Below, piece after piece: positions 3,513-61,500 of a stretch of 64,000 bases of DNA (position 1 is the stretch's first letter; each line of letters opens with the position of its first letter). Origin of the DNA: Octopus sinensis (taxonomy: Eukaryota); assembly GCF_006345805.1 (NCBI RefSeq), contig NC_043001.1, forward strand, positions 18,166,001 through 18,230,000. The letters are read 5' to 3'. A program made the translations under genes and the position numbers. The notes under the pieces are model-generated. The model worked only from the letters and a program-made list of their open reading frames with translations. It ran no database searches and was not told where the DNA came from.

Positions 3513-3905
3513 GGCGCAGGAGTAGCTGTGTGGTAAGTAGTTTGCATACCAACCACATGGTTCTGGGTTCAGCCCCACTGCGTGGCACCTTGGGCAAGTG
3601 TCTTCTACTATAGACTCGGACTGACTAATGCTTTGTGAGTGGATTTGGTAGACGGAAACTATAAGAAACCCGTCGTATATATGTATGTGTGTATATATAT
3701 ATGTGTGTATATGTATGTATGTGTATATGTTTGTGTGTCTGTGTTTGTCTCCCAACATCTCTTGACAACCGATGCTGGTGTGTTTACGTCCCCGTAACTT
3801 AGCGGTACTAGGCTTACAAATAATAAGTCCTGGGGTCGATTTGCTCAACTACAGGTGGTACTCCAGCATGGCCACAGTCAAATGACTGTAACAAGTAAAA
3901 GAGTA
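3513..3905 (+). mobile_element. SINE family 1 (tRNA-like head GGCGCAGGAGTGGCTGTGTGGTAAG...GGTTCAGTCCC, internal (TA)/(TG) tract). Other copies at about 6260-6610, 10055-10910 (cluster), 14565-14960, 17075-17450, 23578-23955, 24220-24590, 27652-27790, 30750-31150, 34036-34365, 38570-38795, 45280-45665, 48800-49120, 52375-52760, 61920-62565
   Basis: About 390 bp unit repeated more than 15 times in both orientations, with A-box-like TGGCTGTGTGG and B-box-like GGTTCAGTCCC. Confidence 0.8.
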
Positions 3906-4520: not shown

Positions 4521-5252
4521 GTGATTATAATAGTATTTTTTTTTATAGTAAATGATCTTAACATTCTTTTTACTTTACATAAAATATTCTTTACATTCTA
4601 CTGTTGTTTTATTGCCATCTATTTACAAGTATTATAAATTTCATAGGTGAAATATTTTTCTGGGAACAAATTATGATCGCCAGCCTCGTCTGGCACCTGT
4701 GTCGGTGACACATAAGAAATCACCATCCGAGCGTAGCCGTCTGCCAGCCTCGTCTGGCACCTGTGTCGGTGGCACATAAAAAACACCATCCGAGCGTGGC
4801 CGTCTGCCAGCCTCATCTGGCACCTGTGTCGGTGGCACATAAAATCACCCACTACACTCTCGGAGTGGTTGGCGTTAGGAAGGGCATCCAGCTGTAGAAA
4901 CACTGCCAGATCTGACTGGCCTGGTGCAGCCTTCGGGCTTGCCAGACCCCAGTTGAACCGTCCAACCCATGCTAGCATGGAAAGCGGACGTTAAACGATG
5001 ATGATGATGATGATGATGATGATTGCTACTATGGGAAATTATTGCTCTGCTTTACAAATTTTCACTTTACGAGCGGCCTCTGGGAACAAATTAGCTCGTA
5101 TATCACACACACACACACACACACACACACATTTACATACAGTTTCTCCGATGTGGGGGGCATGTTAGGTTCAACAGATATCTAGGACTAGACTCTGATC
5201 TTTGACATTTCATTAGTTATATGTACTTTTTCGTGTATGAAACTTCAATTAA

Positions 5253-7910: not shown

Positions 7911-8235
7911 CGAGGGGCGTTCAATAAGTAATGCCCTGACCCACTTCCCATAGCAGTAGAGCAACGAAACTTGGCACAGTTATTAGTCTTTTTCTACATA
8001 GGAACCACCCAGAGTTACGCATTTCTCCCATCGTTTGATGCGGCTCTGGAGACCGTTTTTGTAGAAGACCCCAGCTTGGTCCTCCAACCTCAACGTGACT
8101 TCAGAAATCAAGGCTGCATCATCTGGGAAACGCTTTCCTTTCAAAAACAACTTCATGATTGGGAAGAGGTGAAAATCAGAGGGTGCAAGGTCAGGAAAGT
8201 ATTCTGTCTGTCTTTTTTCCCAAACTACTAAGTTA
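7911..8235 (-). mobile_element. Mariner transposon 3' fragment (transposase C-terminus plus TIR)
   Basis: Minus-strand YFPDLAPSDFHLF...RIKRWEKCVTLGGSYVEKD* carries the mariner YSPDLAPSD motif; TA followed by TIR CGAGGGGCGTTCAATAAGTAA at 7909. Confidence 0.85.
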
Positions 8236-10604
8236 CAGGACTGCACTGGTTGTCAGGCGGTGATGAAGATAAACAAACAAACACACAGACACACGTATAC
8301 ATGTATTTATATACACAACGGGCTCTTTTCAGTTTCTGTCTACCAAACCTATTCACAAGGCTTTGGTCAGTCCATGGTGCTGCACTGCGGGACTGAACCC
8401 ACAACCATGTGGTTGGAAAGCAAACTTCTTATTTTTTGACTGCCCACAAGGGGCTACACACGGAAGGGACAAACAAGGACAGACAAACGGATTAAGTCGA
8501 TTATGTTGATCCCAGTGCATAACTGGTACTCAATTTATCGAACCCGAAAAAATGAAAGGCGAAGTTGACCTCGGCGGAATTTGAACGCAGAACGTAACGG
8601 CAGACGAAATACCTATTTCTTTACTATGCACAAGGGGCTAAACACAGAGGGGACAAACAAGGACAGACAAATGGATTAAGTCAATTATATCGACCCCAGT
8701 GCGTAACTGGTACTTATTTAATCGAACCCAAAAAAATGAAAGGCAAAGTTGACCTCGGTGGAATTTGAACTCAGAACGTAGCGGCAGACAAACTACCACT
8801 AAGCATTTCGCCCAGCATGCTAATGATTCTGCCAGCTCGCCGCCTTCTCACCACACAGCCACACATGTTTGCAAACCACCTAGAGAACCACTTCATTGTT
8901 TGTATAGTCTGCTAGAAATAGCACCTAAATTCCCTTCAAACTAATGCAGGCACGGGTGACTTTTACAAGAAGTGGGCTGCATGAGATATGGCTCACTATC
9001 AAGCAGGCTGCACTGCCAAAATAATTCAGGGTGATGATTTTTATTAGACATGCCGTTCAGCAAGGCTCATAGGCCATGGATTGCCCATGGTTGCTTCAGT
9101 GTCATCGTCATCATCATCATCGTTTTAGTGTCCACTTTTACATCTTTGGATAAATCAGACAAAATTTGTTGAGGCAAATTTTCTGCAGCTGGACGCTCTT
9201 TTTGTCACCGACCCTCACCATTTTCCAAGTAAAAATGGTATTGTTTTCAAATTTTGGCAACCAGGGAGCAGATAAGTCGATTACATCGCCCACAGTGCAT
9301 GACTGGTACTTATTTTATTCTCTCTCCCCCCTCACTGAAATCACTGTAGTCCTTGACAGAATATGGACGAAATGCTATTAAACGTTTTGCCCAGCATGCT
9401 AATGATTCTGCCAGCTTGCTGCCTTCGAGTAAGGTAATATTTCATCTTGGCCAGATCTGTTTCCATGGAAACGGCACTGCTTGCGTGATAGCATCTCTCA
9501 CTCACAATTATCATGTGATGTGAAAACAAGGGGATATGCACACACGCACACACACACACGTGTGTGTATTTGTATCTCCTTGTCTTCACATCAAAGAAAC
9601 CCTATACGCACACATGCATGTTTGTGTGTGTGTGTGTGTGTGTGTATAATAGGTTTCTTTCAGTTTCCATCTACCAAATCCTCTCACAAGGTTTGGGGTC
9701 AGCCTGGGGCTATATGAAAAAAGAAAAAAGAAAAGCACTTGCCCAAGATACCACAGAGTGGAACTGAACCCGAAACCATGGGGCTGGGAAGTGAACATCT
9801 GAACCACACACCCATGCTTGCGTCTAGCATCTTTAAAAAAAAACCGGAAGAATGAAGTTAATATATTTCTACATAGAGTGTATCTGAGAGAAGACAGAAT
9901 AGTCAATTACTGGATCTTAGCTCTGCTTGTTCTGTACTAGCAACCATCTAAACCAGTGATTCTCAACTAGGGTTCGTATGGCCCCTTGAGGACCTTATAA
10001 AATTTTGTTAAAATATTTTCAGTTTTTTTTTTTTTTTTTAATATGGTATTAGGGGCAGGCATAGCTGTGTGGTAAGAAGCTTGCTTCCCAACCACATGGT
10101 TCCGGGTTCAGTCCCACTGCGTGGCACCTTGGGCAAGTGTCTTCTACTATAGTCTCAGGCTAACCAAAGCCTTGTGAGTGGATTTGGTAGATGGAAACTG
10201 AAAGAAGCTCATATATATATATATATCTTTTACTTGTTTCAGTAATTTGACTGTGGCCATGCTGGAGCACTGCCTTTAGTCGAGCAAATTGACCCCAGGA
10301 CTTTGTAAGCCTAGTACTTTATCTATCGGTCTCTTTTGCTGAACCGCTAAGTTATGGGGATGTAAACACACCAGCATCAGTTGTCAAGCAATGTTGGGGG
10401 GACAAACACAGATATATACACACACACATACATATATATGACGGGCTTCTTTCAATTTCCATCTATCAAATCCACTCACAGGGCTTTGGTCAGCCCAAGG
10501 CTATAGTAGAAGACACTTGCCCATGGTTCCACGCATGGGACTGAACTCAGAACCATGTCATTGGTAAACAAGCTACATACCACAAAGCCACTCCTGCACC
10601 TATA

Positions 10605-16810: not shown

Positions 16811-16986
16811 ATTCTCAACAAAGAAAGCCTATCTGGTCACCTGCAAAAACCAAAAGCCATGAAAGCTCTAAGACCAAAGACAACATAAGTGATTCTGACA
16901 CAACAAACAAAGAACAAACCATGCAGACACCAGATTCAGAATCCCACATTGAGCTTCGAAGGGGACGTAGTGCACGATCAGTACAG
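16811..16986 (+). CDS. First recognisable coding exon (A) of the homeodomain/TFII-I/chromodomain gene: (D)SQQRKPIWSPAKTKSHESSKTKDNISDSDTTNKEQTMQTPDSESHIELRRGRSARSVQ, a disordered S/K/T-rich segment
   Basis: Polypyrimidine tract ending TTTTTTACAG at 16810; CAG|GTCAGT donor at 16987; open frame; phase 1 to 0, matching the next exon. Confidence 0.75.
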
Positions 16987-20232: not shown

Positions 20233-20403
20233 AATAACTCTGTTGATCAAAGGCCTATTCGCAGATGTTCGGAATTCAATGACACACAGCTGGCCTTTCT
20301 AGAGTCACAATGGCAACTAGGAATGGTGTCCGTGTCCCGTGACTGTTGGAAGATGATTGACGATACTGCTGAATGTATTGGAATTTCATCAGCTCGAGTA
20401 AAA
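20233..20403 (+). CDS. Exon B: helices 1-2 and start of helix 3 of an HDX-type divergent homeodomain (NNSVDQRPIRRCSEFNDTQLAFLESQWQLGMVSVSRDCWKMIDDTAECIGISSARVK)
   Basis: TCTTTACAG acceptor and AAA|GTAAGT donor, phase 0 to 0. The F-x-D-x-x-L-A-x-L-x3-W-x2-G-M-x-S-x4-C-x3-I-x3-A pattern matches the HDX homeodomain as I recall it. The intron falls at the common homeobox position just before the helix-3 xW. Confidence 0.85.
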
Positions 20404-22079: not shown

Positions 22080-22644
22080 TTGGGTTGTCCAGAAAGTTTG
22101 TGCCGATTTATAGCAGCTTACCTTTCGACTTATTTTAGAACATGGTTGAGTCCGTAAAATTGAATTTGACTACACCTCCATTTAGAGCACAGTTTAAGCT
22201 AACTTTTTGTGGAAGAAGGTTTATGTTCCTATAACCTGTCTTAATTCTGTAACCCTTTAAAATGGAAAATAAGAAAGTTCATTTTCGGCACTTGATGCTT
22301 TGGGAACCAGACAAAAATTGCTGCAGCTCAGCTGGGATGTGTTACCTCACCCTCCATATTCACCAGATATGCTCCTTCGGATTTCCACTTATTCAGGTCT
22401 CTGCAGAATAGTCTTTATGGTAAAAATTCCAATTCCTTAGATGACATAAATAGACATCTTCATGAATTCTTTGCCATGAAACCACCTCAATTCTGGGAAG
22501 CGGGTATTTTCAAGTTAAAGGATAGATGGAGACGCATTGTGCAACAAAATGGTTCATATTTGGTTGATTTAAAATGTAATGGCAAGTATTTATTGACCTT
22601 TTTATTTCCTTTAAAAATTGGCACAAACTTTCCGGACAACCCAG
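22080..22644 (+). mobile_element. Internally deleted mariner with both 30-bp TIRs and TA TSD
   Basis: TA|TTGGGTTGTCCAGAAAGTTTGTGCCGATTT ... AAATTGGCACAAACTTTCCGGACAACCCAG|TA. The N-terminal MENKKVHFRHLMLW is joined directly to the C-terminal WDVLPHPPYSPD/APSDFHLF...RWRRIVQQNGSYLVD. Confidence 0.9.
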
Positions 22645-23352
22645 TATTATACTACTAATCCTTCTGCCAGCAAATACTAAGAAAAATGATTAAATAAAAA
22701 GGAAACACTAAAGTTCTATTAATTTCTTCTCTTGTTACTTCTTTACTTTCATCTCTATTTCTTTTCTACCCTTTTCCTTTTTTGCTCTTGTTAGCCCCAT
22801 GTAAGCCCCTTGTAAGAACTGATAGAGCAGAACTATAACCAAATGTATTCTAGTCACTGTTACCTTTTTTATTCCGAAAACAATTAGAACTACATTTCCC
22901 AAGTGTCCTTTTTCTTTTCCTTTCTTCAAAGGGTGTATGATACAAAGCAGATTTGACTGCTATTTCTAACATGTTGAATGACCACATAGAAACAGCTGCA
23001 TTGGATTTACAAAAACTGTTTCTCTCTCTCCCTCTCTCTCTCTCCCTCACCCTCTCTCTCTCTCCCTCACCCTCTCTCTCTCTCCCTCCCCCTCTCTCTC
23101 CTTCTCCCTATCTCTCTCTCCCTCTCTTTTTCTCTCTCTCCCTCTCCTCCAACTCTTTATTCTGTACTATTTAAAATATTCAAATTCTCAAAGCATATTT
23201 CCATAAATATTACTTTCATCTCTCACACACTCTCAGATTTGCAACTTTGGCATACACACACACACATTGTCTAAATGTCCAGCTCTGTTTTAAATCATTT
23301 CTCCACTCTTCCAAGAATAAAACTTATTGTTTTTTTTACCCAATTTTTCTAG

Positions 23353-23446
23353 CGGTGGATCCAAGAATACAGCAAAGCTCATGGTTTAGTCATAGATGAA
23401 CCTGTCACTAGAAAACGTAAATTATCAGAATCCAGAAATACAGATG
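23353..23446 (+). CDS. Exon C: remainder of homeodomain helix 3 plus a basic NLS-like motif (RWIQEYSKAHGLVIDEPVTRKRKLSESRNTD)
   Basis: TTTTTCTAG acceptor and ATG|GTTTGT donor, phase 0 to 1. Supplies the invariant helix-3 Trp in register with exon B (RVK|RW). Not in the ORF track. Confidence 0.8.
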
Positions 23447-25424
23447 GTTTGTATCATTATCATAATTGAAGTTTAATGTTTCTCTTGATGTTGTCTGCAG
23501 TAATAATAATAATAATAATCATTTGAAATAAACAAACAAACAAAAAAATCAGGAAGATAGGAAATATTCTTAGATATAGGCACAGGAGTGGCTGTTTGGT
23601 AAGTAGCTTGCTTACCAACTACGTGGTTCCGGGTTCAGTCCCACTGTGTGGCACCTTTGGCTAATGTCTTCTGCTGTAGCCTCAGGCAGACCAAATCCTT
23701 GTGAGTGGATTTGGTAGATGGAAACTGAAAGAAGCCCATCATATGTATATGTTTGAGTGTCTGTGTTTGTCCCCCCACCATCGCTTGACAACCAATGTTG
23801 GTATGTTTACGTCCCTGTAACTTAGCAGTTCGGTAAAAGAGACCAATAGATTAAGTAGTAGGCTTATAATGAATAAGTCCTGGGGTTGATTTGTTCGACT
23901 AAAGGCAGTGCTCCAGCATGGCCACAGTCAAAAGACTGAAACAAGTAAAAGAGCATAATGGGTGCTGCCATTTAAACTGGCTCGCTTGTGCTTCTGCCAC
24001 GTATAAAGCACTTAGTCCACTGTTGGATGGTTGGTGTTAGGAAGGGCATCCAGCCGTAAAAACCCTGCCAAAACAGACACAGAGGCTTGGTGCAGACTCC
24101 TGCCAAACTGTCCAACTCCTGTCAACATGGAAGGCGGATATTAAATGATGATGATGATGGTACATTATCAAAATCTCAAAGCTGCAAAATAATAGATGAT
24201 TAATTCAAAACAATATGAGGCCGTGTGGTAAGTAGCTTGCTTACGAACCACATGGTTCCGGGTTCAGTCCCACTGCATGGCACCTTGGGCAAGTGTCTTC
24301 CACTATAGCCTCGGGCTGACCAAAGCCTTGTGAGTGGATTTGGTAGACGGAAACTGAAAGAAGCCCGTCATATATATATGTATGTGTGTGTGTCTGTGTT
24401 TGTTCCCCCTACATCACTTGACAACCGATGCTGGTGTGTTTACGTCCTCGTCACTTAGTGGTTCAGCAAAAGAGACCGATAGAATAAGTACTAGGCTTAC
24501 AAAGAATAAGTCCTGGGATTAATTTGCTCGACTAAAGACGGTGCTCTAGCATGGCCACAGTCAAATGACTGAAACAAGTAAAAGAGTATTATATTTGACA
24601 GTAATCTGAATGCTTAAGGGTTAAACTGGCCATACCTGGCCAAAATATATTCTACCCGTTTCATGTTCAAACCTGCCTGAGCCAGCCTCTCACACCAACC
24701 TACAATCCTACAATGTCATTCTAGAAACAAATAATCACATCTTTAAAGTCTTGGGGCTTCAAGACAATGTATGATTGATTCAAAGCAGTGTGAATCATCA
24801 TCATTGTTTAACGTCCGCTTTCCATGCTAGCATGGGTTGGATGGTTCAACTGGGGTCTGGGAAGTCAGGAGGCTGCACCAAGCTCCAGTCTGATCTGGCA
24901 GAGTTTCTACAGCTGGATGCTCTTCCTAACGCCAACCACTCCGAGAGTGTAGTGGGTGCTTTTTACGTGCCACCAGCACTAGTGCCAGATGAGGCTGGCA
25001 AACGGCCACGATCAGAATAATATTACATTTGACGGACAGAGTAATCTGAATGCTAAAAAGTTAGGAAGTTCACTTAACAACCATGTGGTTCCGGGTTCAA
25101 TCCCACTGCATGACTACTTTGGGGATGTCCTTCATCGTGGCCTCATGAAGCCCAATGTTAAACTTCCCAACTATTGCTGGAACTCATTTTACACTTGAGA
25201 AACTGGAGCAGTGTGAAATGAAGTGTTTTGCTCAAGAACTCAATGCACACCGTCTGATTCAGGAGTTGAAACCACAATCTTGTAGTCATGAGTGCAACAC
25301 TTTAACCTCTAGGCCATGTACATTTACAGTAAAATAATAAAAGAGTGGGTGGGAAAAAAATCCAGATTTGAAAGTTGTTGCAAGTTTTATAATAATTGCG
25401 TGTTTTGTGAATTCCATTTTATAG

Positions 25425-25609
25425 ATTTTGGTTCCGATACTGGAGGTGAAGAAAATGAAGAACTTGAGAGTGCGGCGAAAAAGAGTAAGAAAAGTCCATC
25501 TAGAAGCAAGACCAAAGAAAACAGAGAGACGACGGACAAAAAAGAGACTAACCGGAACCAGAACAAGCGTGAACAAATTGTGGGGTTACTGGGGAAACTC
25601 AGCCACACT
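25425..25609 (+). CDS. Exon D: acidic/basic linker and start of a TFII-I-type leucine zipper (...NKREQIVGLLGKLSHT)
   Basis: CATTTTATAG acceptor and ACT|GTAAGA donor, phase 1 to 0. The C-terminal EQIVGLLGKLSHT resembles the DEIITSLVSALDSM segment of GTF2IRD1 (recalled). Confidence 0.8.
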
Positions 25610-26693
25610 GTAAGATCCATTTCCATCATCATCATCATCATTATCATCATCAGTTGAAGCATTTGAATATTGCAATGTTTTTAAGAACCCCTTTAGAATT
25701 GTGTGATGAAATAATTGCTTAACCGATTGAGTCCTGTTGTTAATGTTCCTGTTTATGTTTGTTCATTAGCTCCACTCAGTTCTGTTCTGTGATAACAAAT
25801 ATTTTGGATGGGAACACCACTGCATTGACCTGTTGCTATTGTTTTGCATAAATCTTCATGTTGTTGTGGAAGCAAGCTGGTCTCAGATGTTCAAAACATG
25901 ATTTCTTCGGTCTTGGTGTTATGGTGTCATTGAGACCCAAAGGTGCCTTATGACTTAATTCTTCCTTTCACACCGTCTCCGATGAAAGGTCTTGGTGTTA
26001 TGGACATCTTAGACATACTACAGTAGCCGCAGGACAGTGTTGCCCTCTCCAGACCCATCGTAGCAGTTGGTCACAATGTTCATCATCATCGTTTAACGTC
26101 CGCTTTCCATGCTAGCATGGGTTGGACGAATGACTGAGGGCTGGTGAACCAGATGGCTGCACCAGGCTTCAATCTTGATCTTGCAGACTTTCTACAGCTG
26201 GATGCCCTTCCTAATGCCAACCACTCCGAGAGTGTAGTGGGTGCTTTTATGTGCCACCGGCACAGGGCCAGTCAGGCGATGCTGGTAACAATCACACTCG
26301 AATGATGTCTTTTACATGCCACCGGCACGGAGGCCAGATAGCCGCTCTGGCAACGATCACGCTCAGATGGTGCTCTTAATACCCTACTAGCATGGGGCTC
26401 GAGTGCCAGAAAGGTGATGCTGGTAATGATCACGCTCAAACGGTGCCTTTTAAGTGCCACTGGCACGGAAGCCAGTTTGCCAGTCTGTCAATGATCACAC
26501 TCGTAGTGTTGTCAGCTAATAAATCATTTGTCACTTATATTCTACTGTTGATGCTATTTACTGCAGTAATTTATTTTTATCTCATGGTAGCTATTTTCAG
26601 CTAAGGCAACCGATCATTTGCGAATCACACCTATCTTGAACATGAATGCAATGCTCTGCAGGTGGCTGGATATGAACCACCAACCACCCTGCT

Positions 26694-26985
26694 GGAGGCA
26701 CATGGCCTAGTGGTTAGAGCAGCGGACTTGCGGTCGAGAGATTGTGGGTTCGAATCTCAGACCAGGCGATGTGTGTGTTTATGAGCGAAAACACCTAAGC
26801 TCCATGTGGCTCCAGCAGAAGGTAATGGCAAACTTCTGCTGACTCTTTCGCCACAACTTTCTTTCACTCTTTCCTCCTGCATCTTGCAGCTCACCTGCGA
26901 CAGACCGGCATCCCGTCCAGGTGGGGGAACCTATATGCCAAGGAAACTGGCCCTTATGAGCCAGGCGTGGATCGAGAAGGAGCAA
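26694..26985 (+). mobile_element. tRNA-derived SINE (family 4). Related heads at about 53063-53295 (+), 45908-46045 (+), 63295-63432 (-), 17880-18120 (-)
   Basis: A-box TGGCCTAGTGG and B-box GGTTCGAATC followed by non-tRNA body; dispersed copies. Confidence 0.7.
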
Positions 26986-27319
26986 ACAAAACAAACAACC
27001 CTGCTGGTTGTTAGTTATCCTATCCACTTTGCCATCTACATTTTCATAAAAGAAATACAAACTATCACCCGGGGAATCCATGCAATGATCTTCTTTACCA
27101 TTTGTAACCAGAGTGCTTTACTATCTGAGCCAATTCCCCAACTGATAATGCTATGCCATAGACGCACTAACACTAAACATAATCATATATTTACTGAGAT
27201 TCACTCAACTTTAGCATTGGTTTGTTTGTTGTTTTTGTTCCTGTTCCTTTTTTTTTTTTTTTTTTTGTCATGTCTTCCTAATTAATTACTGAATTGTTCC
27301 TATTATAAATTATTTTTAG

Positions 27320-27461
27320 TGTTCATCATTGTCATCTCTTGGTGTTGAAACTGCCTGTCTAGCTGTCAACAAACCAGTTGTTTTCACACTAGGTAGTAAA
27401 TATGGTACAAACTTCCTTAAAAAAGAAAAGCAATTACAGAACAAATTTCTTGCCTACTTAG
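27320..27461 (+). CDS. Exon E: TFII-I family N-terminal leucine-zipper/dimerisation region (CSSLSSLGVETACLAVNKPVVFTLGSKYGTNFLKKEKQLQNKFLAYL)
   Basis: TATTTTTAG acceptor and TAG|GTTGGT donor, phase 0 to 1, 142 nt. Aligns without gaps over 47 aa to GTF2IRD1 [47 protein letters not shown] (recalled), with 20 identities by hand. Confidence 0.85.
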
Positions 27462-28357: not shown

Positions 28358-28435
28358 CCAAGGGCAAAGATCAGCCCAAAAACAATCGTAAGAAGCTTGC
28401 AGAAGAAGTGAAGGCCTTATTCAATGAGAAGTTTT
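28358..28435 (+). CDS. Exon F: start of a GTF2I (I-) repeat (AKGKDQPKNNRKKLAEEVKALFNEKF)
   Basis: TTCGTTTCAG acceptor and TTT|GTGAGT donor, phase 1 to 1. LAEEVKALFNEKF matches the I-repeat first helix (LRKQVEELFNEKY). Confidence 0.85.
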
Positions 28436-30069: not shown

Positions 30070-30247
30070 CTTTATGTTGCGGCAGTACTCGGACCATGCC
30101 ATATGTTAAACTGGAAAAAGATCCTATGTTTATCGACATTGAAGGCTTCCCGGATGGCATTATCCTAAAAAGACCACAGTCCTATGGAATATCGGATCTT
30201 CGGAAAATTTTAAATGCTTCTGAAAAAATCCAGTTTCACCTAAAGAA
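30070..30247 (+). CDS. Exon G: body of the GTF2I (I-) repeat (SLCCGSTRTMPYVKLEKDPMFIDIEGFPDGIILKRPQSYGISDLRKILNASEKIQFHLK)
   Basis: Long pyrimidine tract then CTACCAG acceptor; GAA|GTAAGT donor; phase 1 to 2. PY-x8-I-EG-x-P-x-GI-x3-RP-x2-YGI-x2-L-x2-IL-x5-I-x-F matches the I-repeat signature (VPY...[26 protein letters not shown]...IRFVIK). Confidence 0.9.
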
Positions 30248-32532: not shown

Positions 32533-32666
32533 TCCACAGCCAAACAAAAAGAAAGTCACTTCTAACCCGACGCCAAAGAAAGAAAATACGAGTACAGAAT
32601 CCACAGAGAACAATTTACCGCCTCCTACTTTACCTGCTCAGTCCAATGACACACAACCTAATAAAG
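32533..32666 (+). CDS. Exon H: P/T/S/K-rich disordered linker (NPQPNKKKVTSNPTPKKENTSTESTENNLPPPTLPAQSNDTQPNK)
   Basis: TTTGTTTGTTCAG acceptor and AAG|GTGAGA donor; phase 2 to 1, which bridges exons G and I exactly. Confidence 0.75.
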
Positions 32667-35279: not shown

Positions 35280-36116
35280 ACCTCCGAACAAAATCAGACA
35301 GTTTTGGTAATAGTGGCAACAAAAGGAATAATTCCACTCCTCCTCCACCTCAGCTTGAACCTGAACGTCCACAACTTGAGTTGAACATGGATTCAAAGAC
35401 TAAACCAGATCAAGTTCCAAAATTTGGTACAGTTGAGCCTCAGTTCTCAACGTTACCAAAAGCCTTTCAGACTTCAGGGAACACTCCAGGAAGTGAGTCT
35501 TTCTTACACAGTTCGTATATGACTACAAATTCAAACACGGGTTCCCAGGCACAAAACCCCAATAAATCCTTACAAATGAGACAAAGTGCTGCGTTTGGCA
35601 GCAAGCCCATTGTCACAAGCCCTGCATTCTTGCAGCACAGAACTACTTTCGGTTCTGGGAGCAGTCGCCGAAAAGCTCTAGAATTAGCACGCTCAGAGCA
35701 GAAAGCTCTGGAAGAGAAATCTAAAAAGGCTGTTGAGACACTGAAACCTGTTGAGCAGCCCAAGACTGATTTTCAGCAGAATTCGGACAGCAAGTCTGTG
35801 GCCAAATTTGACATCAGTTCAAGATCTGTTGAAGCTTCCAAATTTAAACCAATTGATTCAATGCAATTCAAACCTATGGAGAGCCCTAAGTTTAAGGGCA
35901 TAGAAATTGCTAAATTCAAACCTATAGAGAGTGCTAAATTCAAACCAATGGACAGTAAGTTTAAACCTGTAGAAACGACCAAATCTGACAAAAAATCTTC
36001 TGACAGTGTTCTTGTTGAAAAGAAAAAACCTGAAACACCAAAATCTCAAAAGAAAGAATCAGAAAACACAAAATCACAGAAGTCTAAAGATTCTGATGGC
36101 AAATCAGGAACTGAAA
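35280..36116 (+). CDS. Exon I: 837-nt disordered S/K/P-rich exon containing a short coiled-coil-like stretch (RRKALELARSEQKALEEK) and six KFKP-type repeats
   Basis: Longest non-repeat ORF in the window (35264-36130). TTTTTATTTCAG acceptor and AAA|GTAAGT donor, phase 1 to 1. Confidence 0.85.
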
Positions 36117-42933: not shown

Positions 42934-44728
42934 TGTTAGATTAAACGAATAGCCGATTGTCATCATCATCATCATCATTTAGCGTCCGTTTTCCATGCTA
43001 GCATGGGTTGGACGGTTCAACTGGGGTCTGTGAAGCCAGAAGGCTGCGCCAGGCCCAGTCTGATCTGGCAGTGTTTCTACGGCTGGATGCCCTTCCTAAC
43101 GCCAACCTCTCTGCGAGTGTAGTGGGTGCTTTTTACGTGCCACCTGCACAGGTGCCAGACGGAGCTGGCAAACGGCCACGAACAGATCGTGCTTTTACCT
43201 GCCACTGGCACGGGGTCCAGGCAGGGCTGGCAACGGACACGAACGGATGGTGCTTTTACGTGCCACCGGCACGAAGGCCAGTCGGGGCAGCGCTGGCAAC
43301 GGCCACAATCGGATGGTTTGCTTAAACCACAGCTGCAATTTCCATTGATGTTGATCGACTTCGATTTTGGTTCTGCTCTCTGATATCTGATTTGATTTGG
43401 TTTGATTGTGTATGTGTATTTCAAACCTGGGTTGGATGGTTCTACAAATTTTGATTTTTGCATAACCATTTAGATTATACAGGACAAATGGCTGGATCTG
43501 TAGAATTTCAGACAGAATAACTTGTGGTATTTCTCAGTTCAAATCCCATCATCCAGGTTCAGTTTCCTTTTAATCCTTTTAGTCAATAAAATAAGTACTG
43601 AAGGTCAATGAACTCAACTACAAGTTAGAAGCTGGTGCTCCTGTGTGGCCACAGTCCAGAGACTGGAAATGATTTTTTAAAAATACTGTTCATAGCACTA
43701 TCATAGGTGGATTATCCATATTTTCAGTGGGAATAGGCTACCTTGGATAGTCCAATCTACAGTACAATAAGGACAGATGTGCTAAACACAGACAATTATG
43801 GTTGAGCCTGTAGAGATGTTTGAAATCATAGAGTTCCAAAGGAAGGATTAAGAGCCAGGAGACAAGAAAAGCCCTTTGTAATATTTGTTGAATGTCAACA
43901 TCATCAGGAGTTAGATAATTCATACATTGTTGCAAGAATTGTTTAATATACCAAAAAAATCTTAACTTTTCCTCCTATCATTGTTTTTTAAATGAGAACC
44001 ACTTGTAATTTCAGAATTGTGTTCTCACAACCAAATTGGAGCGGCTGTGGCTTGGATGCCAATCGAACCCTCTAGAATTTTCCATTAGCTTCTTTCGTGT
44101 CTTGAGTCTGCTTCGTTAAAGCTAATCATCATCATCATCGTTTAACGTCCGCTTTCCATGCTAGCATGAGTTGGACGATTTGACTGAGGGCTGGCGAACC
44201 AGATGGCTGCACCAAGCTCCAGTTTTGATCTGGCAGAGTTTCTACAGCTGGATGCCCTTCCTAATGCCAACCACTCCGAGAGTGTAGTGGGTGCTTTTAC
44301 GTGCCACCGGCATGGGAACCAGTCGGGCGGTACTGGCAATGACCTCGGTCGAATCTTTTTACACATGCCACCAGCACAGGTGCCAGTAAGGTGATGCTGG
44401 TAACAATCACGCTCGAATGGTGCCCTTTTACATTCCACCGGCACGGAAGCCAAAAGCTATTTAACAACAACAATAGCAACAGAAATGATATCCTTATCAT
44501 TTTTATATTTAATGTCTGTATAATGGAATCCAAGATTCATGATATCTGCAGCGTGTCTCCTTCTCCCATTACAATTATTTTCTGTAGTCTTAGGATCTGG
44601 AACTCAAAGAAGAAGCTTACAAGCAGATGCAATTCAATGGTTGTTTATTTTAGTTCTCATTTGTGTGGCTCGTTCCCGGTGACAGCTCATGGTTCATTGT
44701 TCTGTTTTTGATTTGACGGTCATTCAGA

Positions 44729-44943
44729 ATGCTCACAGCAGCCATATTCCTACCGCTCTATGTCACGCTGGTGAGACCCATATTGGAGTACGGGATTCAA
44801 GCCTCTTCTCCTTATCTCCTTAAAGACATACATCATCTCGAAAGAGTCCAGAAGCTGGCAACCCGCATGGTTCTTGGTCTCAAGCATTTGTCTTATGAAG
44901 AAAGGCTGAAGACGCTCGACCTTTATTCTCTCGAAAAACGACA
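44729..44943 (+). mobile_element. CR1/L2-type LINE reverse transcriptase C-terminal fragment
   Basis: LYVTLVRPILEYGIQASSPYLLKDIHHLERVQKLATRMVLGLKHLSYEERLKTLDLYSLEKR. Confidence 0.85.
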
Positions 44944-47072
44944 ACCGGTGAAGTTAGAGCAGGATAAGAATCTGCTGTGAGATGCCAGCTGGCAGTGTTT
45001 CTCAGCGCAAGTGAGAAAGAGAAGAGAGACTGAATGCCTTAATACGCCTGCTTAAATAGTCATTGGCGACGAGATCTTGCTCTTATCTCAGACATGGCTA
45101 TGGCTGCCAGCGAGATCTTGTACAAAATGGTACTGGCTTCTTGTGTCACGCTACACCTGTTTTGTACACCTATATGAATTATGTCGGTGTATTTCTGTTA
45201 CGGCTATCAACGTATGAATTCCATATAAATGGGTTAGAATTGAAGATGAACAGAGCAATATTCAACCGAAAGAATCAATAGGCGTAGGAGTGGCTGTGTG
45301 GTAAGTAGCTTGCTTGCAAACTACATGGTTCCGGGTTCAGTCCCACTGCGTGGCACCTTGGGCAAGTGTCTTCTACTATAGCCTCGGGCCGACCAAAGCC
45401 TTGTGAGTGAATTTGGTAGACGAAAACTGAAAGAAGCCCATCATATATGTGTGTGTGTGTGTGTGTGTGTTTGTCCCCCCAACATTGCTTGACAACCGGT
45501 GCTGGTGTGTTTACGTCCCCGTAATTTAGCAGTTCAGCAAAAGAGACCGATAGAATAAGTACTAGGCTTACAAAGAATAAGTCCTGGGGTCGATGTGTTC
45601 AACTAAAGGCAGTGCTCCAGCATGGCCACAGTCAAATGACTGAAACAAATAAAAGAGAAAGAGAGAGAGTAAAGCTGTGTGGTAAGAGGTTTGCTTCCGA
45701 ACCACATGGTTCCAGGTTCAGTCCCACTGCATTGCATCTTACCAAAGTGTTGTGAGTGGATTTGGTAAGCAGAAACTGAAAGAGGCCCACCGGGCAAGCG
45801 CACGTGTGTGTGTGTTATGATTTTGCTTAGACATGGTGATACTAATAACCAGTTGTTAGTACTCTATATACATGTGCTTTAGAATAAAGCATTAAGTACA
45901 ATTCATGACGGCACATGGCTCAGTGGTTAGAACATCAGGCTCGCAATCATGAGGTAGTGAGTTTGATTCCCAGACCAGGCTGTGTATTGTGTTCTTGAGC
46001 AAGACGCTTTATTTCACGTTGCTCCAGTTTACTCAGCCGTAGAAATGAGTTGCATACACACACACTTCCAGAGTTTGGACAAAATAATGGAAACACCTTA
46101 AAATTTCAAACAAATTTATTTTAATATTGGGTAGGACCGCCTTGAATTCTATGAGGTGTTGGCCTTTGCCTTTCCCTGGGATAATATTTGTGTCATGGAT
46201 AGGAGAGGCTGGTATGCATGGGCACCTGCCAGTCTTCCATAAACAATCTTGCCCAGACTTGTGCCTCAGAGGGTAACTTTGTAAGTGCAATCCCATGGTC
46301 ATTCATGACCGATGCAGGTCTTTACTCCTTACAGATCATAATATTGATTATTGAGTGACAAGGAACCGGAATTAGGGAGGGAGAGAGAGAGATATAGTCT
46401 TATTTTGTAAGAGTCTTTTAATGCTTATAAATACTCACACTGATTGCTGTTTTTGTTGTTACTTAGAGTTCCAAAAATTTTCAGTACAAAGATGGACATA
46501 GCTGTGTAGTTAAGAAGTTTGTTTCATGATCAGACTGTTCTAGGTTCAATCCCTCAACATAGCACCTTGAGGAAGTGTCTTCCACTGTCGCCTGAGCCAA
46601 CCGAAGGCTTGTCGAGTGGGTTCAGAAGACAGAAACTGAAAGAAGCCTGTTTTTTGTGTGTGTTTGTGTCTCTTTATCTTGGCATTTTACTCTAAGTATA
46701 AATGAATGATGTACTTGCTAATATGCAATCTGCTGTAAAAACATGTCCGGCCATCATACTGTTATTGTTTGAAAGTGTATATAGAAAATACTACCTTGCT
46801 TGAAGATAGGTGAATGTTGGTGACAGGGAAAGCATCAGGTCAGAGAAAATTTACTTCAGTGAATTTCACCCAATACATGCAAGCATAGAAAAGCCGATGT
46901 TATGATATTGTCACCATGGATACCAATTTTTCTGGTGACCTTCATGAACTGTTTAAATTTTGGGGATTATGGCTAAAACCAAAGTGACCATGTTGTAGGG
47001 TTTGATACAACAATATTAGTTTCTTCTCATGGTTTCGGATTGAAATTCTTACTAAACGTGTGTGTGTGTGTC

Positions 47073-56157: not shown

Positions 56158-56291
56158 GTGAGGTTTTTATTGTAGAGAAAGTCTTAAAGAAACGTGTGCA
56201 GAAAGGTCATCAAGAGGTTTTGGTCAAATGGAAAGGTTACAGCAATCGTTACAACTCATGGGAACCAGTGGACAACATTTTCACCATGTAA
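56158..56291 (+). CDS. Terminal exon J: Polycomb/CBX-like chromodomain (EVFIVEKVLKKRVQKGHQEVLVKWKGYSNRYNSWEPVDNIFTM*)
   Basis: Strong pyrimidine tract then TTTCCAG acceptor, phase 1; TAA stop at 56289-56291. Has the classic xF/YxVExI...LVKWKGY...NxWEP chromodomain motif. Too short for the ORF track. Confidence 0.85.
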
Positions 56292-56334: not shown

Positions 56335-56794
56335 TAAGTAAAAAAAAATAATACTTTAAAACAAAAAAAAAAAAATAATCTCAATGAAGTAGAACTCATT
56401 TCAGCTTGTAGATCAGATTTTCACTAGATTGTTGGTCCTGCCAACATCTAATCACATGACTATTTGCACTACATTTCTTTTTTTTCTTTTTTTTTTTTTT
56501 TTAATAATAATTATAATTATAATTAATAATAATTATAAAAGTTTGGAGAGCAAAGGATCTCAGGGCTAGAACACATGGAAATTTATCTCTTTCTCTCTAT
56601 CTCTCATTCTCCCCCCCGCCTTCCCCCTTCCCTGCCCCCCTTAATGCAAATGCATAAACACATATGCATGCACAACCATACAGAAAGAAAAGAAAAGAAA
56701 AGAACTTTAAGGTTACCTTCGTGAAAAATTCCCTAAGAAAATCTTTGAAAATTCCGAAATATTCAGATTTAGATTAAAATATGGAAAAGAAAAA

Positions 56795-56821
56795 TAATAT
56801 ATATATATATATATATGTATG

Positions 56822-56853
<32 letters not shown>

Positions 56854-56889
56854 ACACACATATACATATATATATATATGCACATATAC

Positions 56890-56922
<33 letters not shown>

Positions 56923-56968
56923 TACATATATATGTATATATATATACACATATACATACATATATATG

Positions 56969-57046
<78 letters not shown>

Positions 57047-57052
57047 ACATAC

Positions 57053-57085
<33 letters not shown>

Positions 57086-57103
57086 CACATATACATATAT
57101 ATG

Positions 57104-57149
<46 letters not shown>

Positions 57150-57193
57150 CATATATATGTATATAAATATATATATATGTATATACATACATA

Positions 57194-57245
<52 letters not shown>

Positions 57246-57270
57246 GTTAACCCCGACTCAACCCGGGACC

Positions 57271-57312
<42 letters not shown>
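56795..57312. repeat. About 500 bp (TA)n/(CA) compound microsatellite
   Basis: Directly visible; source of ORFs 56713-57315. Confidence 0.95.
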
Positions 57313-57316
<4 letters not shown>

Positions 57317-57997
57317 AAACTTAACAAGAAATGATACTTGGATTTTTTATTTATCCTCCTACCACCGACCACCCCTCCAGGGCCAATGATTTTTCTGAAA
57401 AGGATTTTTGTCAAAATGAAAATGAATCTTGGATCTTGTTTTAGTCTACTTAGCATTAGGGAGAGACAGCATTAAGTTGGGTTTTTTTTTAACTCTACTT
57501 TCTCGAATTTTATTTCTTCACAATCAATAATTGCACAAAATTTGTCTACATGCTTAATATAAACACTTGTAGAATGCCCGATTTTGTATGTAGGAAACTA
57601 ACAGATTAAGAAATTCCCGAAACGTTTGTCAGCTTGTTTTGTAACTAAGCGAGGGGAGACTTTTGATACATGTTTCTATAAGTGTGCATTGTGCTTGCAC
57701 ACGCATGCATTCTGTGTGATACTTAGGCAGTGTTAACATCTTAATATGTGTTTGTGTGTGTGTGTGTGTGTGTATATGTGCCTTAATGTTACTGGGTTTT
57801 GAGCGGGGCAGGACTGGATTTGTTCGACACTATTTATATGTCGATTACAGCTGAACTAATAGGGATTATTAGGAAAGAATAAATTCTGTTTTGGAATTTC
57901 ATTTTCTAGCGTTGGTTAAGTGAAGCAAAAGTTTAAATTGTGCATACGTATTATATATCGTGCTAGCGCGGAAAACGGACGTTAAATGATGATGATG

Positions 57998-58033
<36 letters not shown>

Positions 58034-58209
58034 CACATATATACATATACATATATATACATACATATATATATATATACATACATATATATATACACAT
58101 ATATATATATATATATAAAATTGAATAAGGGTAGAAATTGATATTAATCAATTAAAACCAGTGGCCTAACATATTAAAGAAATCCGAAGATTAAAATATT
58201 TTTACATAC

Positions 58210-58390
58210 AAAATTTAAAGGACTGACCACTAAAAGTGGACGGTCAACATGCTAGATATAGACGTCAAAATCGCTATTTTCCACGAAGAACGTGTTTATT
58301 TGAGAACACGTTCTTCGTGGAAAATAGCGATTTTGACGTCTATATTTAGCATATTGACCTTCCACTTTTAGTGGTCAGTCCTTTAATTTT
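58210..58390. mobile_element. (TA)n-flanked hairpin element with arms of about 86 bp
   Basis: AAAATTTAAAGGACTGACC...ACGTGTT / TATTTGAG / AACACGT...GGTCAGTCCTTTAATTTT. Confidence 0.6.
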
Positions 58391-58451
58391 ATATATATAT
58401 ATGTATATGAGTGTGTGCGTGTATCTCTGGATAGCCTTGTTGCTTATTTTG

Positions 58452-58518
<67 letters not shown>

Positions 58519-61500
58519 GAAGAGCATAGGCTCGAAACGTCAAATACTCTTCCATTTTTCCTGAGCGTCAAACTAATACACCTTGTTCGTTGTTCCCTCA
58601 TCTGTCTATGTCTTAAGTTTACTGTACAATTTTGAACCACCATGTGTGTTTGTGTGTATCTATGTATGTGTGTGTGTATATATATATATGTATGTATGTA
58701 TATAGATATTTGATTAATGAGAGAGACAGATGGAAAATATGAGAACCACTGCAATTTTTTTTACCCATCTAACAATGATCCCTCTCAGGTGGGATACTGA
58801 ACAACTGGTTTAGGAGTAGCCGGCAGTGTAGATGTGTCTCTTCAGGTGATTATAAGACATATCTCCCTAAAATAACGACTGTTCTGCAAGATATCTTCTC
58901 GGTTTGTGTATAGAAAAACAGCAAGTGTCTCTGTATGTGTGTGTGTGTGTGTATGCATACACGCTCAGAAGTTCTGGTGATTCACAGAATTTCTCACAAT
59001 GGAAGGAATCCTCTTTCCATATTGTAATGATGGAATGAATCCTCTGCTTCTTCCACATGAATAAACACAATTAAGGAGTTGGGAGTAATTTCAAAATAGG
59101 AAAACAAGTTTTCTAACATATTTATCAGATTTCAAGAGTTTTATTTCAGTAAGTTCAGCTCTTTATTTCATCTTCTCCCTTTGTAGTGTAAACTGGAATA
59201 TGTACGCCATATAGAAACCAAAAAAAAAAACAAAACAACATAATCTAAAGACAAGAAGGAAATGATTGAGTTATTATTACCAGCATATATCTCATCAGTT
59301 CATAGCAACAACCCCATTGTCATTTTTAATCAACAACTATAATATTTTTAAAAGCATTTTATCCCCCCGTCACCATGTCCATACAAAACCCAGAACAGTT
59401 AGAAAGCTTGAGAATTTATCAAACATTTCTGCGAAAAATAATATCTTGATCAACACCCCCCTGAAAGTCACTATTGTCATCTCCTGTGTAGGATTTTTTC
59501 AAGAAGGTTCTTTTTGTTTTTTGGGGGGTTTTTTTTTTAAAAAAAAAAAAAAGGAATTTTTTTTTTTTAACACAATTCTATCTCCAAACTTGTTCTGGCA
59601 AAAATCTTTTAAGAAGCAGATCCATTTAAAAAAAAAAAAAGAAAGAAAAAAAGAAGCAGGAGAGAAAGTATATCTCCTAAACAGTAGCAATATGAACAAA
59701 TACCTAAATTTTTTTTTTCTCTCATGGAATGAATAAAAGAAAGAAAGAAAAATATCTAAAAAAAAAAACAAAGAAATCAAAATACTGTTCTTTTGTCATT
59801 TTTGTTTGTTCTTAACTGTTTTTTTTTATGCATTGTCTGTTAATCCTTTGAGTGGATTGGATTGGTTGTTTGTGTTCAGTACACAGCAGGAGGAGGTCAT
59901 CAGCATGTTCTCTTTAACCATAGCCCAATGTGGAGGCCATGAATTTGAGCTTGAGATCACACTGGTTTGATGAGTCTACCCTGCCACACTGGTTCAGAAG
60001 GGTACAGTTTTTATATCCTTACCCAGGTATAGTTAAGACAATTATATCAACCCCTGTGCTCTACTGGTACTTATTTTATCTGAAAGGATATGGCACGTTA
60101 AAAGCACCATCCGAATGTGGTCAATGCCAGTGCCGCCTTGACTGGCTTCCGTGCCTGTGACACGTAAAATGCATCAACCGATCATGGCCGTTGCCACCCT
60201 GTGCCAGTGGCACGTAAAAAGCACCATCCGAATGTGGTCGATGCCAGCGCCGCCTTGACTGGCTTCCGTGCCTGTGACACATAAAAAGCACCAACCAATC
60301 ATGGCTGTTGCCAGCCTCCCCTGGCACCTGTGTCGGTGGCACATAAAAAGCACCCACTACACTCACGGAGTGGTTGGCGTTAGGAAGGGCATCCAGCTGT
60401 AGAAACACTGCCAGATCAGATTGGGGCCTGGTGCAGCTTCCTGGCTTCCCAGACCCCAGTCAAACCCATGCTAGCATGGAAAATGGATGTTGAACGATGA
60501 TGATGATGGATGAAAGGCAAAGTCGACCTCAGCAGAATTTGAACTTAGAATATAAGCATGGATGAAATACCACTAAGCATTTCGTCTGGCATGCTAATGA
60601 TTCTGCTAGCTCAACACCTTCAACCCCTCATCATCATCGTTTAACATTTGTTTTCCATGCTGGCATGGGTTGGACGGTTTGACTGGGGACTGGCAAACCA
60701 GGAGGCCGCACCAGGCTCCAACCTGATCTGGCAGAGTTTCTACAGCTGAATGCTCTTCCTAACACCAACCACTCTGAGAGTGTAATGGGTGCTTTTTATG
60801 TGCCACTTGCATGGGAGCCAGTCAAGCGGCACTGGCATCAGCTATGTTTGTATGGTGCTTTTTACGTGCTACCGGCACAGAAGCCAGTCAGGGCAAGGGG
60901 GGCTGGCATTGACCATGTTCAGATGATGCTTTTTACATGCCACCAGCACAGGGAGCCAGTCAGGTGGGCTCTGACAGCGACCCACACGCGAATGGTGCTT
61001 ATTGCGTGCCACCAGCACAGGGAGCCAGTCAGGTGGGCTCTGACAGCGACCCACACACGAATGGTGCTTATTGCGTGCCACTAGCACTGGTAACGGCCAC
61101 AAATACAATTTCCATTTGATTTACTTGACTCCATAGGTCTCCTCAAGCACGGAATGTCACCCAATGATTCAAAGGGACTTTTTAAATGGGCTGGTTATGC
61201 TCTTATGCGACCCTGGTGTAGGCTATGGCTGGGACCTCACTTTCCTTGCTGAGTCTTCTCAATCACAGAATATCTCCAGAGGTCTCGGTCTTTCATCAAA
61301 AATGTGCAAATACGTGTGTAATATTTAAGACCGCAAATAATTATTAACTGTTCGATGGCCCGTAAAAAGCACCCACTACACTCACGGAGTGGTTGGCGTT
61401 AGGAAGGGCATCCAGCCGTAGAAACATTGCCAGATCAGACTGGAGCCTGGTGCAGCCTTCTGGCTTCCCAGACCCCGTTTGAACCGTCCAACCCATGCTA

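Follow-up and report, generated by a model that had tools for sequence, protein, structure and literature searches.

Within the 64,000-nucleotide (nt) stretch of Octopus sinensis DNA analysed here (NC_043001.1, positions 18,166,001 to 18,230,000; hereafter the window), the region between 16.8 and 56.3 kilobases (kb) holds the 3' two-thirds of one gene, represented by ten exons (A to J). Four of them (D to G) code for a module which very likely has a common ancestral gene segment with the N-terminal part of the vertebrate proteins GTF2IRD1 and TFII-I. In order, the module comprises a helix with heptad (leucine-zipper-like) spacing, a beta-hairpin with a further helix, a short linker and a single GTF2I-like repeat (I-repeat). 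The segment from which our analysis started (25560-27461) begins with the last 16 codons of exon D, continues through a 1.7-kb intron filled with repeats and closes with exon E, which codes for CSSLSSLGVETACLAVNKPVVFTLGSKYGTNFLKKEKQLQNKFLAYL, that is 47 amino acids (aa) plus one nucleotide, with cysteine as the first residue. Exon E provides the end of the zipper helix, the beta-hairpin and the following helix, and is the counterpart of the GTF2IRD1 segment CSALSKL...FLRFC. Taken as a whole, the octopus protein is no canonical TFII-I; it is a relative with a different architecture.

The first line of evidence is the sequence of the zipper region itself. As comparison set we used authentic vertebrate GTF2IRD1 N-termini, and an approximate human sequence served solely as the probe for retrieving them. 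Exon E aligns to mammalian GTF2IRD1 (P0001) without gaps and with 20 identities over the 47 residues, exactly the count that a preliminary description of this DNA had reached by hand; against bird, reptile and fish GTF2IRD1 the ungapped identities amount to 14-19 of 47. If the 15 preceding residues are included, BLASTP yields 51.6 bits (25/61 identities, ungapped), and a comparison of the cephalopod with the vertebrate alignment by hhalign extends over 62 columns of the zipper region at 40% identity (97.3% probability, E 2.7e-11). Smith-Waterman local scores lie 17-24 standard deviations above those of 5000 shuffles. Besides, a hidden Markov model (HMM) of the vertebrate N-termini, run against 3292 pieces of the six-frame translated window, recovered exon E as the only significant piece (E 5e-8), the second-best piece having an E value of 0.77. 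The heptad core, with its seven-residue spacing, reads I-L-L plus L-M-L in vertebrates and I-L-L plus L-T-L in octopus, and with the register read by eye five of the six core positions are identical to GTF2IRD1. An approximate GTF2I sequence can likewise be aligned to exon E without gaps (about 35% identity, 35.8 bits). Overall, homology between the octopus segment and the zipper region of TFII-I and GTF2IRD1 is nearly certain.

The domain that follows is a genuine I-repeat. Spliced exons F and G score 59.7 bits with the Pfam model PF02946 (GTF2I) at a cut-off of 27, and the three cephalopod proteins described below reach 54-57 bits. All PDB sequence matches at E <= 0.001 are repeat structures of the TFII-I family (ten entries, E 8e-13 to 1e-3), the best one being the GTF2IRD1 repeat 2dzq (E 8e-13). 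A Foldseek search with the structure model returned the same ten GTF2I-domain structures and nothing else at E <= 0.001. The zipper region hence precedes the first I-repeat in the order known from vertebrates and characteristic of the TFII-I family, at an internal position in the octopus protein.

Gene structure provides further support for a common origin. The preliminary description had named a 142-nt exon for the corresponding GTF2IRD1 segment and proposed a comparison of exon lengths and phases. For this comparison, which covers GTF2IRD1, we mapped vertebrate genomic DNA of a GTF2IRD1-like locus of the fish Cottoperca gobio (L001) and of a mammalian-type contig (L002). In both, the zipper exon has indeed 142 nt and runs from phase 0 to phase 1, with the borders cag/TGC...TGC C/gtgagt in the mammalian-type contig. 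In total, four consecutive introns (D/E, E/F, F/G and G/H) are common to octopus and vertebrates, each in the same codon and in the same phase. Intron D/E lies where vertebrate GTF2IRD1 has its intron in front of the Cys codon, and exon D ends at the position and in the phase of the vertebrate exon that ends ...ALDSM/V. The intron inside the I-repeat is of phase 1 and interrupts a Ser codon after an aromatic residue (NEKF/S in octopus, VLY/S in fish), and the intron at the end of the repeat is of phase 2 and follows ...FHLK in octopus and ...FTVK in fish. The same borders are found in five mammalian and bird read-through open reading frames (ORFs; P0036, P0064, P0079, P0028, P0033), namely ...ALDSM/VSFW, ...PAQ/CSALSKL...FLRFC-R/EYSG and ...VLYS/KILPH. 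Thus, the octopus gene shows the exon organisation of the family as seen in GTF2IRD1: the zipper exon has 142 nt, and an intron of phase 1 divides the I-repeat after the aromatic residue. The retention of the introns excludes a transfer via mRNA, and shared introns together with an identity of about 40% point to old common descent.

The gene in question is O. sinensis LOC115211899, with an identical coding sequence, and it extends from upstream of the window start to 56.3 kb (Table 1); the analysis identified no gene next to it. The coding exons of the window match residues 557-1265 of the annotated proteins of O. vulgaris (CAI9722904) and O. sinensis (XP_029636503) exactly, and the borders of exon E agree exactly with both, so that its length, phases and Cys start stand as first read from the letters. 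One or more long low-complexity exons coding for the N-terminus lie upstream of the window. The O. sinensis isoform X3 (P0093, 711 aa) starts with MSN/SQQRK, which implies a different first exon that lies 5' of exon A. All domains reside on a single transcript, as an uninterrupted 889-aa ORF with the helix-turn-helix (HTH)-like region, the zipper, the I-repeat and the chromodomain is present in contigs of 3.4-3.7 kb from 16 sequencing runs. The last intron (36117-56157, + strand) has about 20 kb and is made up of interspersed repeats; no other recognisable coding exon of the gene was seen in it.

Table 1. Exons of LOC115211899 in the window and the intron within the zipper region. Residue ranges refer to the O. 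vulgaris protein P0090; a slash marks an exon border; pLDDT, predicted local distance difference test. The last column gives the equivalent exon of the Cottoperca gobio GTF2IRD1-like locus.
Feature	Position	Strand	Length and phase	Borders or protein match	Product or content	Fish counterpart
Exon A	16811..16986	+	176 nt, phase 1 to 0	aa 557-615 exact, ag/gt borders	Ser/Lys-rich low complexity, (D)SQQRKPIWSPAKTK...RSARSVQ	
Exon B	20233..20403	+	171 nt, phase 0 to 0	aa 616-672 exact	first part of homeodomain-like HTH region, RRCSEFNDTQLAFLESQW...ISSARVK	
Exon C	23353..23446	+	94 nt, phase 0 to 1	aa 673-703 exact	rest of HTH-like region (RWIQEYSKAHG...) and basic KRK stretch	
Exon D	25425..25609	+	185 nt, phase 1 to 0	tatag/AT...CACACT/gtaaga	acidic/basic linker, then start of zipper helix, NKREQIVGLLGKLSHT (25562-25609, last 16 codons)	
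Intron D/E	25610..27319	+	1710 nt, phase 0		mostly interspersed repeat copies	
Exon E	27320..27461	+	142 nt, phase 0 to 1	tttttag/TGTTCA...CTTAG/gttggt	see text	3618-3759, 142 nt, phase 0 to 1
Exon F	28358..28435	+	78 nt, phase 1 to 1	matched to P0090	short linker and first helix of GTF2I-like repeat, KKLAEEVKALFNEKF	177 nt, phase 1 to 1
Exon G	30070..30247	+	178 nt, phase 1 to 2	matched to P0090	remainder of the single GTF2I-like repeat, SLCCGSTRTMPYVKLEKDPMFIDIEGFPDGIILKRPQSYGISDLRKILNASEKIQFHLK	184 nt, phase 1 to 2
Exon H	32533..32666	+	134 nt, phase 2 to 1	aa 898-942 exact	low-complexity linker	
Exon I	35280..36116	+	837 nt, phase 1 to 1	aa 943-1222 exact	long, mainly disordered, one predicted helix, KFKP-type repeats; pLDDT <50 outside the helix	
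Exon J	56158..56291	+		aa 1223-1265 exact	C-terminal CBX/Polycomb-type chromodomain, EVFIVEKVLKKRVQKGHQEVLVKWKGYSNRYNSWEPVDNIFTM, including stop codon	

Around the module, the protein carries a homeodomain-like region and a chromodomain, which are not known from the vertebrate family. Exons B and C may encode a very divergent homeodomain: the Pfam models HTH_23 and HTH_28 give sub-threshold scores of 14-16 bits, one homeobox entry of the PDB is matched (2da4, E 0.0097), and three helices are predicted with a pLDDT of 45-64. The motif RRCSEFN.TQLAFLESQW...ISxARVKRWI of these two exons is highly conserved among cephalopods. At the other end, exon J encodes a chromodomain (Pfam Chromo, 52.8 bits) with CBX4 and CBX8 as best PDB matches (E 1.5e-12) and with the aromatic-cage positions F, W and Y present in the printed alignment. 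The protein stops at ...NIFTM, so that positions 1-40 of the 53 Pfam positions are spanned and the C-terminal helix typical of chromodomains is missing. To find this domain at the very end of a protein with a GTF2I repeat is unusual. In an AlphaFold2 model of isoform X3, for which 14 aligned sequences were used, most of the protein is disordered (mean pLDDT 44.9) and the I-repeat stands out at 82-92. Over the zipper the model predicts a 31-residue helix (187-217), followed by a beta-hairpin (223-228 and 231-236) and two helices (238-262; exon E corresponds to residues 212-258 of this shortest isoform). In terms of the model, "zipper" is a shorthand for a helix-hairpin-helix module, and Foldseek found no solved structure resembling the predicted zipper-hairpin unit.

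Orthologues are found in three Octopus species, in a cuttlefish and in one further source represented by assembled transcripts. A phmmer search of 1.84 billion representative proteins with exon E gave three matches at E <= 0.001, all of them from cephalopods: Octopus bimaculoides XP_014770978 (P0087, 1242 aa, 100% identical over exon E), Acanthosepion pharaonis CAE1255533 (P0089, the cuttlefish, 791 aa, 94%) and a Logan-assembled sequence (P0088, 646 aa, 94%). All cephalopod models share the same layout with HTH-like region, zipper, one I-repeat and chromodomain. The stretch from KREQIVG to YLAKGK is almost invariant between octopus, cuttlefish and the Logan transcript, which indicates strong constraint. 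When metagenomes were scanned with the cephalopod alignment, no relative was found. In the databases these proteins appear as "uncharacterized protein", "probable serine/threonine-protein kinase ifkA", "myb-like protein V", "MAL13P1.304" or "Chromo domain-containing protein", and no public name of the gene's products refers to TFII-I. Pfam detects neither a kinase nor a Myb domain in the cephalopod proteins, and the RefSeq names of the kinase and Myb type, and likewise MAL13P1.304, look like artefacts of low-complexity similarity. An automatic Pfam or InterPro scan of the proteins would presumably flag the GTF2I domain. Our literature search for an invertebrate or cephalopod TFII-I retrieved no report, only the statement that TFII-I is "vertebrate-specific" (PMC9900109), in agreement with how the family had been characterised in the preliminary description. 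What our data add is therefore the placement in this family, the homology of the zipper, the conservation of the gene structure and an unusual architecture.

Several observations speak against the proposed descent and have to be weighed. The same phmmer search with the 47-aa exon E found no vertebrate and no non-cephalopod invertebrate protein at E <= 0.001. Since 47 aa are too short to reach vertebrate sequences of 40% identity among 1.84 billion proteins, these missing matches are not evidence of absence; the phyla are linked by pairwise and profile statistics and by gene structure rather than by a blind reciprocal best hit. The segment, which had been described as an N-terminal zipper, turned out to be internal, with exon E at residues 766-812 of the 1265-aa O. 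vulgaris model. According to Pfam, each of the full-length proteins P0087, P0088 and P0089 has one I-repeat, and our own I-repeat HMM gave a single match in the six-frame translated window, which thus lacks further I-repeats; the vertebrate members of the TFII-I family are characterised by two to six in tandem. The conserved C-terminal region of GTF2IRD1 and its SUMO motif are absent and the octopus protein ends in the chromodomain instead; a tblastn search of the window with an approximate GTF2IRD1 sequence hit nothing beyond zipper and repeat. In the structure model, the confidence for the zipper region is moderate (pLDDT about 60-73), and a monomer model is silent on dimerisation. Finally, the homology comes from the sequences themselves, whereas the function of the cephalopod members is something we infer by analogy.

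The most serious competing explanation accepts the homology and concerns the history of the gene around the module. An ancient TFII-I-type cassette consisting of exons D-G could have been captured by an unrelated chromodomain/HTH gene through exon shuffling in cephalopods, in which case the homology would be real and the octopus gene as a whole would not be an orthologue of the TFII-I ancestor. This would fit with the combination of HTH-like region, zipper, one I-repeat and C-terminal chromodomain, which is not known as an architecture of the vertebrate family, and with the detection of orthologues in cephalopods only. The cassette is not phase-symmetric (it is entered in phase 1 and left in phase 2), which is compatible with either history. 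On the other hand, three cephalopod lineages all share the full architecture, and no observation separates shuffling from a loss of the HTH-like region and the chromodomain in vertebrates combined with a multiplication of the repeat. Taken together, we regard such a capture as possible, although rather unlikely. The reverse scenario, in which a module of bilaterian age first existed inside a reader protein composed of homeodomain-like region, zipper, single repeat and chromodomain, an arrangement that cephalopods would have kept, and vertebrates lost the reader domains and multiplied the repeat, appears to us more doubtful still. If true, a chromatin-reader ancestry would do away with the description as "vertebrate-specific" and hint at chromatin targeting as an original role of the family.

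By comparison, explanations without common descent fare poorly. A chance or convergent likeness of a short amphipathic helix-hairpin-helix to the GTF2IRD1 N-terminus might be considered, as the segment has a length of 47-62 aa and the single-sequence search reached no vertebrate at E <= 0.001. However, such a likeness would have to account for z-scores of 17-24 over shuffled sequences and for an ungapped alignment of 62 columns with 40% identity, and it would have to lie immediately before a true GTF2I repeat, just as in vertebrates, with an identical exon length and four shared intron positions and phases in addition. Four exact intron coincidences within about 170 aligned codons have, as a rough estimate, a probability of about 1e-9, and we consider convergence very improbable. 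Vertebrate DNA in the octopus lineage, either from assembly contamination or from recent horizontal transfer, could be suspected for a family that is called vertebrate-specific (PMC9900109). Yet the identity to vertebrates of about 40% is not that of a recent acquisition, the exons are embedded in long introns full of the repeats that occur throughout the window, exons of the same gene lie on both sides, and orthologues are present in the Octopus species, the cuttlefish and the further transcript source. With the introns retained and the mRNA route thereby closed, an acquisition from vertebrates is hardly credible. Consequently, homology, identical order and shared introns argue for common descent and against convergence, contamination of the assembly and retro-transfer, and in this respect the preliminary description was right. 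Its additional conclusion of a bilaterian ancestor goes further than this, as it is drawn from cephalopods and vertebrates only; most likely, the module predates the split of protostomes and deuterostomes.

For the function of the octopus protein, the vertebrate proteins serve as the comparison. TFII-I without its first 140 aa fails to co-precipitate wild-type TFII-I, complex formation being under the control of the zipper motif (PMC2865459); in GTF2IRD1 the zipper is among the strongly conserved regions (PMC3493543). By analogy, the octopus zipper helix would mediate dimerisation, an assumption towards which we lean slightly. A dimer could bring two single I-repeats together for DNA binding, to which the HTH-like region might add further DNA contacts and the CBX-type chromodomain contacts to methyl-lysine on histones. 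In this way, the protein would act as a chromatin-associated transcriptional regulator. We give the putative role as a chromatin reader less weight than dimerisation; the chromodomain lacks the usual C-terminal helix.

Apart from this gene, the window consists of AT-rich, repeat-laden animal DNA. One family of interspersed repeats has more than 12 copies on both strands with translations such as HHHH..LTSAFHASMGWTVQLGS...LQLDALPNANHSESVVGAF (for example at 2205-2750, 4622-5051, 24775-25017, 26080-26500, 43002-43380 and 60124-61120), and one copy lies inside intron D/E. Long microsatellites of the TA/CA type, translating as YIYIYI..., start a few hundred bases after the stop codon (56716-57346 and 57966-58567) and coincide with the lowest G+C content of the window (0.28-0.31). 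By eye, the ORFs at 22296-22655 (+) and 7986-8252 (-) look like C-terminal ends of mariner-type transposases (...APSDFHLF...), and the ORF at 44717-44977 (+) resembles the tail of a reverse transcriptase of long interspersed nuclear elements. They have no Pfam match at E <= 0.01 and are therefore probably decayed remnants. Pfam scans of five long ORFs outside the gene, which we took for remains of transposons, gave no match. No tRNA genes were found in the window.

Williams-Beuren syndrome has craniofacial, cognitive and social features for which GTF2I and GTF2IRD1 are the main candidate genes. According to our data, the core module of zipper and repeat is much older than the vertebrates, and the cephalopod gene, misnamed as it is in public databases, offers an outgroup for reconstructing the origin of the multi-repeat vertebrate proteins. 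With one zipper and one repeat, the octopus protein represents a minimal natural version of the family, which could simplify the study of dimerisation and of the contribution of a single I-repeat to DNA binding, and the CBX-type chromodomain suggests a connection to chromatin.

Among the known systems, GTF2IRD1 (also BEN, MusTRD1 or GTF3) shares with the octopus protein i) the homologous zipper helix, hairpin and helix, ii) the 142-nt exon and iii) an I-repeat as the next domain. GTF2IRD1 has five I-repeats, a conserved C-terminal region that binds PIASx, and SUMO sites, and it starts about 27 residues before the zipper. In the octopus protein, by contrast, 186 (isoform X3) to about 740 residues including the homeodomain-like region precede the zipper, and the linker between zipper and repeat is much shorter, being encoded by a 78-nt instead of a 177-nt exon. 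GTF2IRD2 combines two I-repeats with a C-terminus derived from a hAT transposase, whereas the octopus gene contains no transposase part, and the GTF2IRD2 repeat 2e3l matches the octopus repeat only weakly (E 0.0012). Invertebrate annotations as "GTF2IRD2-like" usually reflect this transposase part and not the I-repeats. The octopus chromodomain is similar to those of CBX4, CBX8 and CBX2, but in CBX/Polycomb and HP1 proteins, which have neither I-repeat nor zipper, the chromodomain is N-terminal and its C-terminal helix follows, while in octopus it ends the protein. TFII-I (GTF2I) resembles the octopus protein in the succession of a zipper and I-repeats, its zipper being N-terminal and needed for self-association (PMC2865459). 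The two differ in what follows: TFII-I has six repeats and no chromodomain, the octopus protein a single repeat together with a chromodomain.

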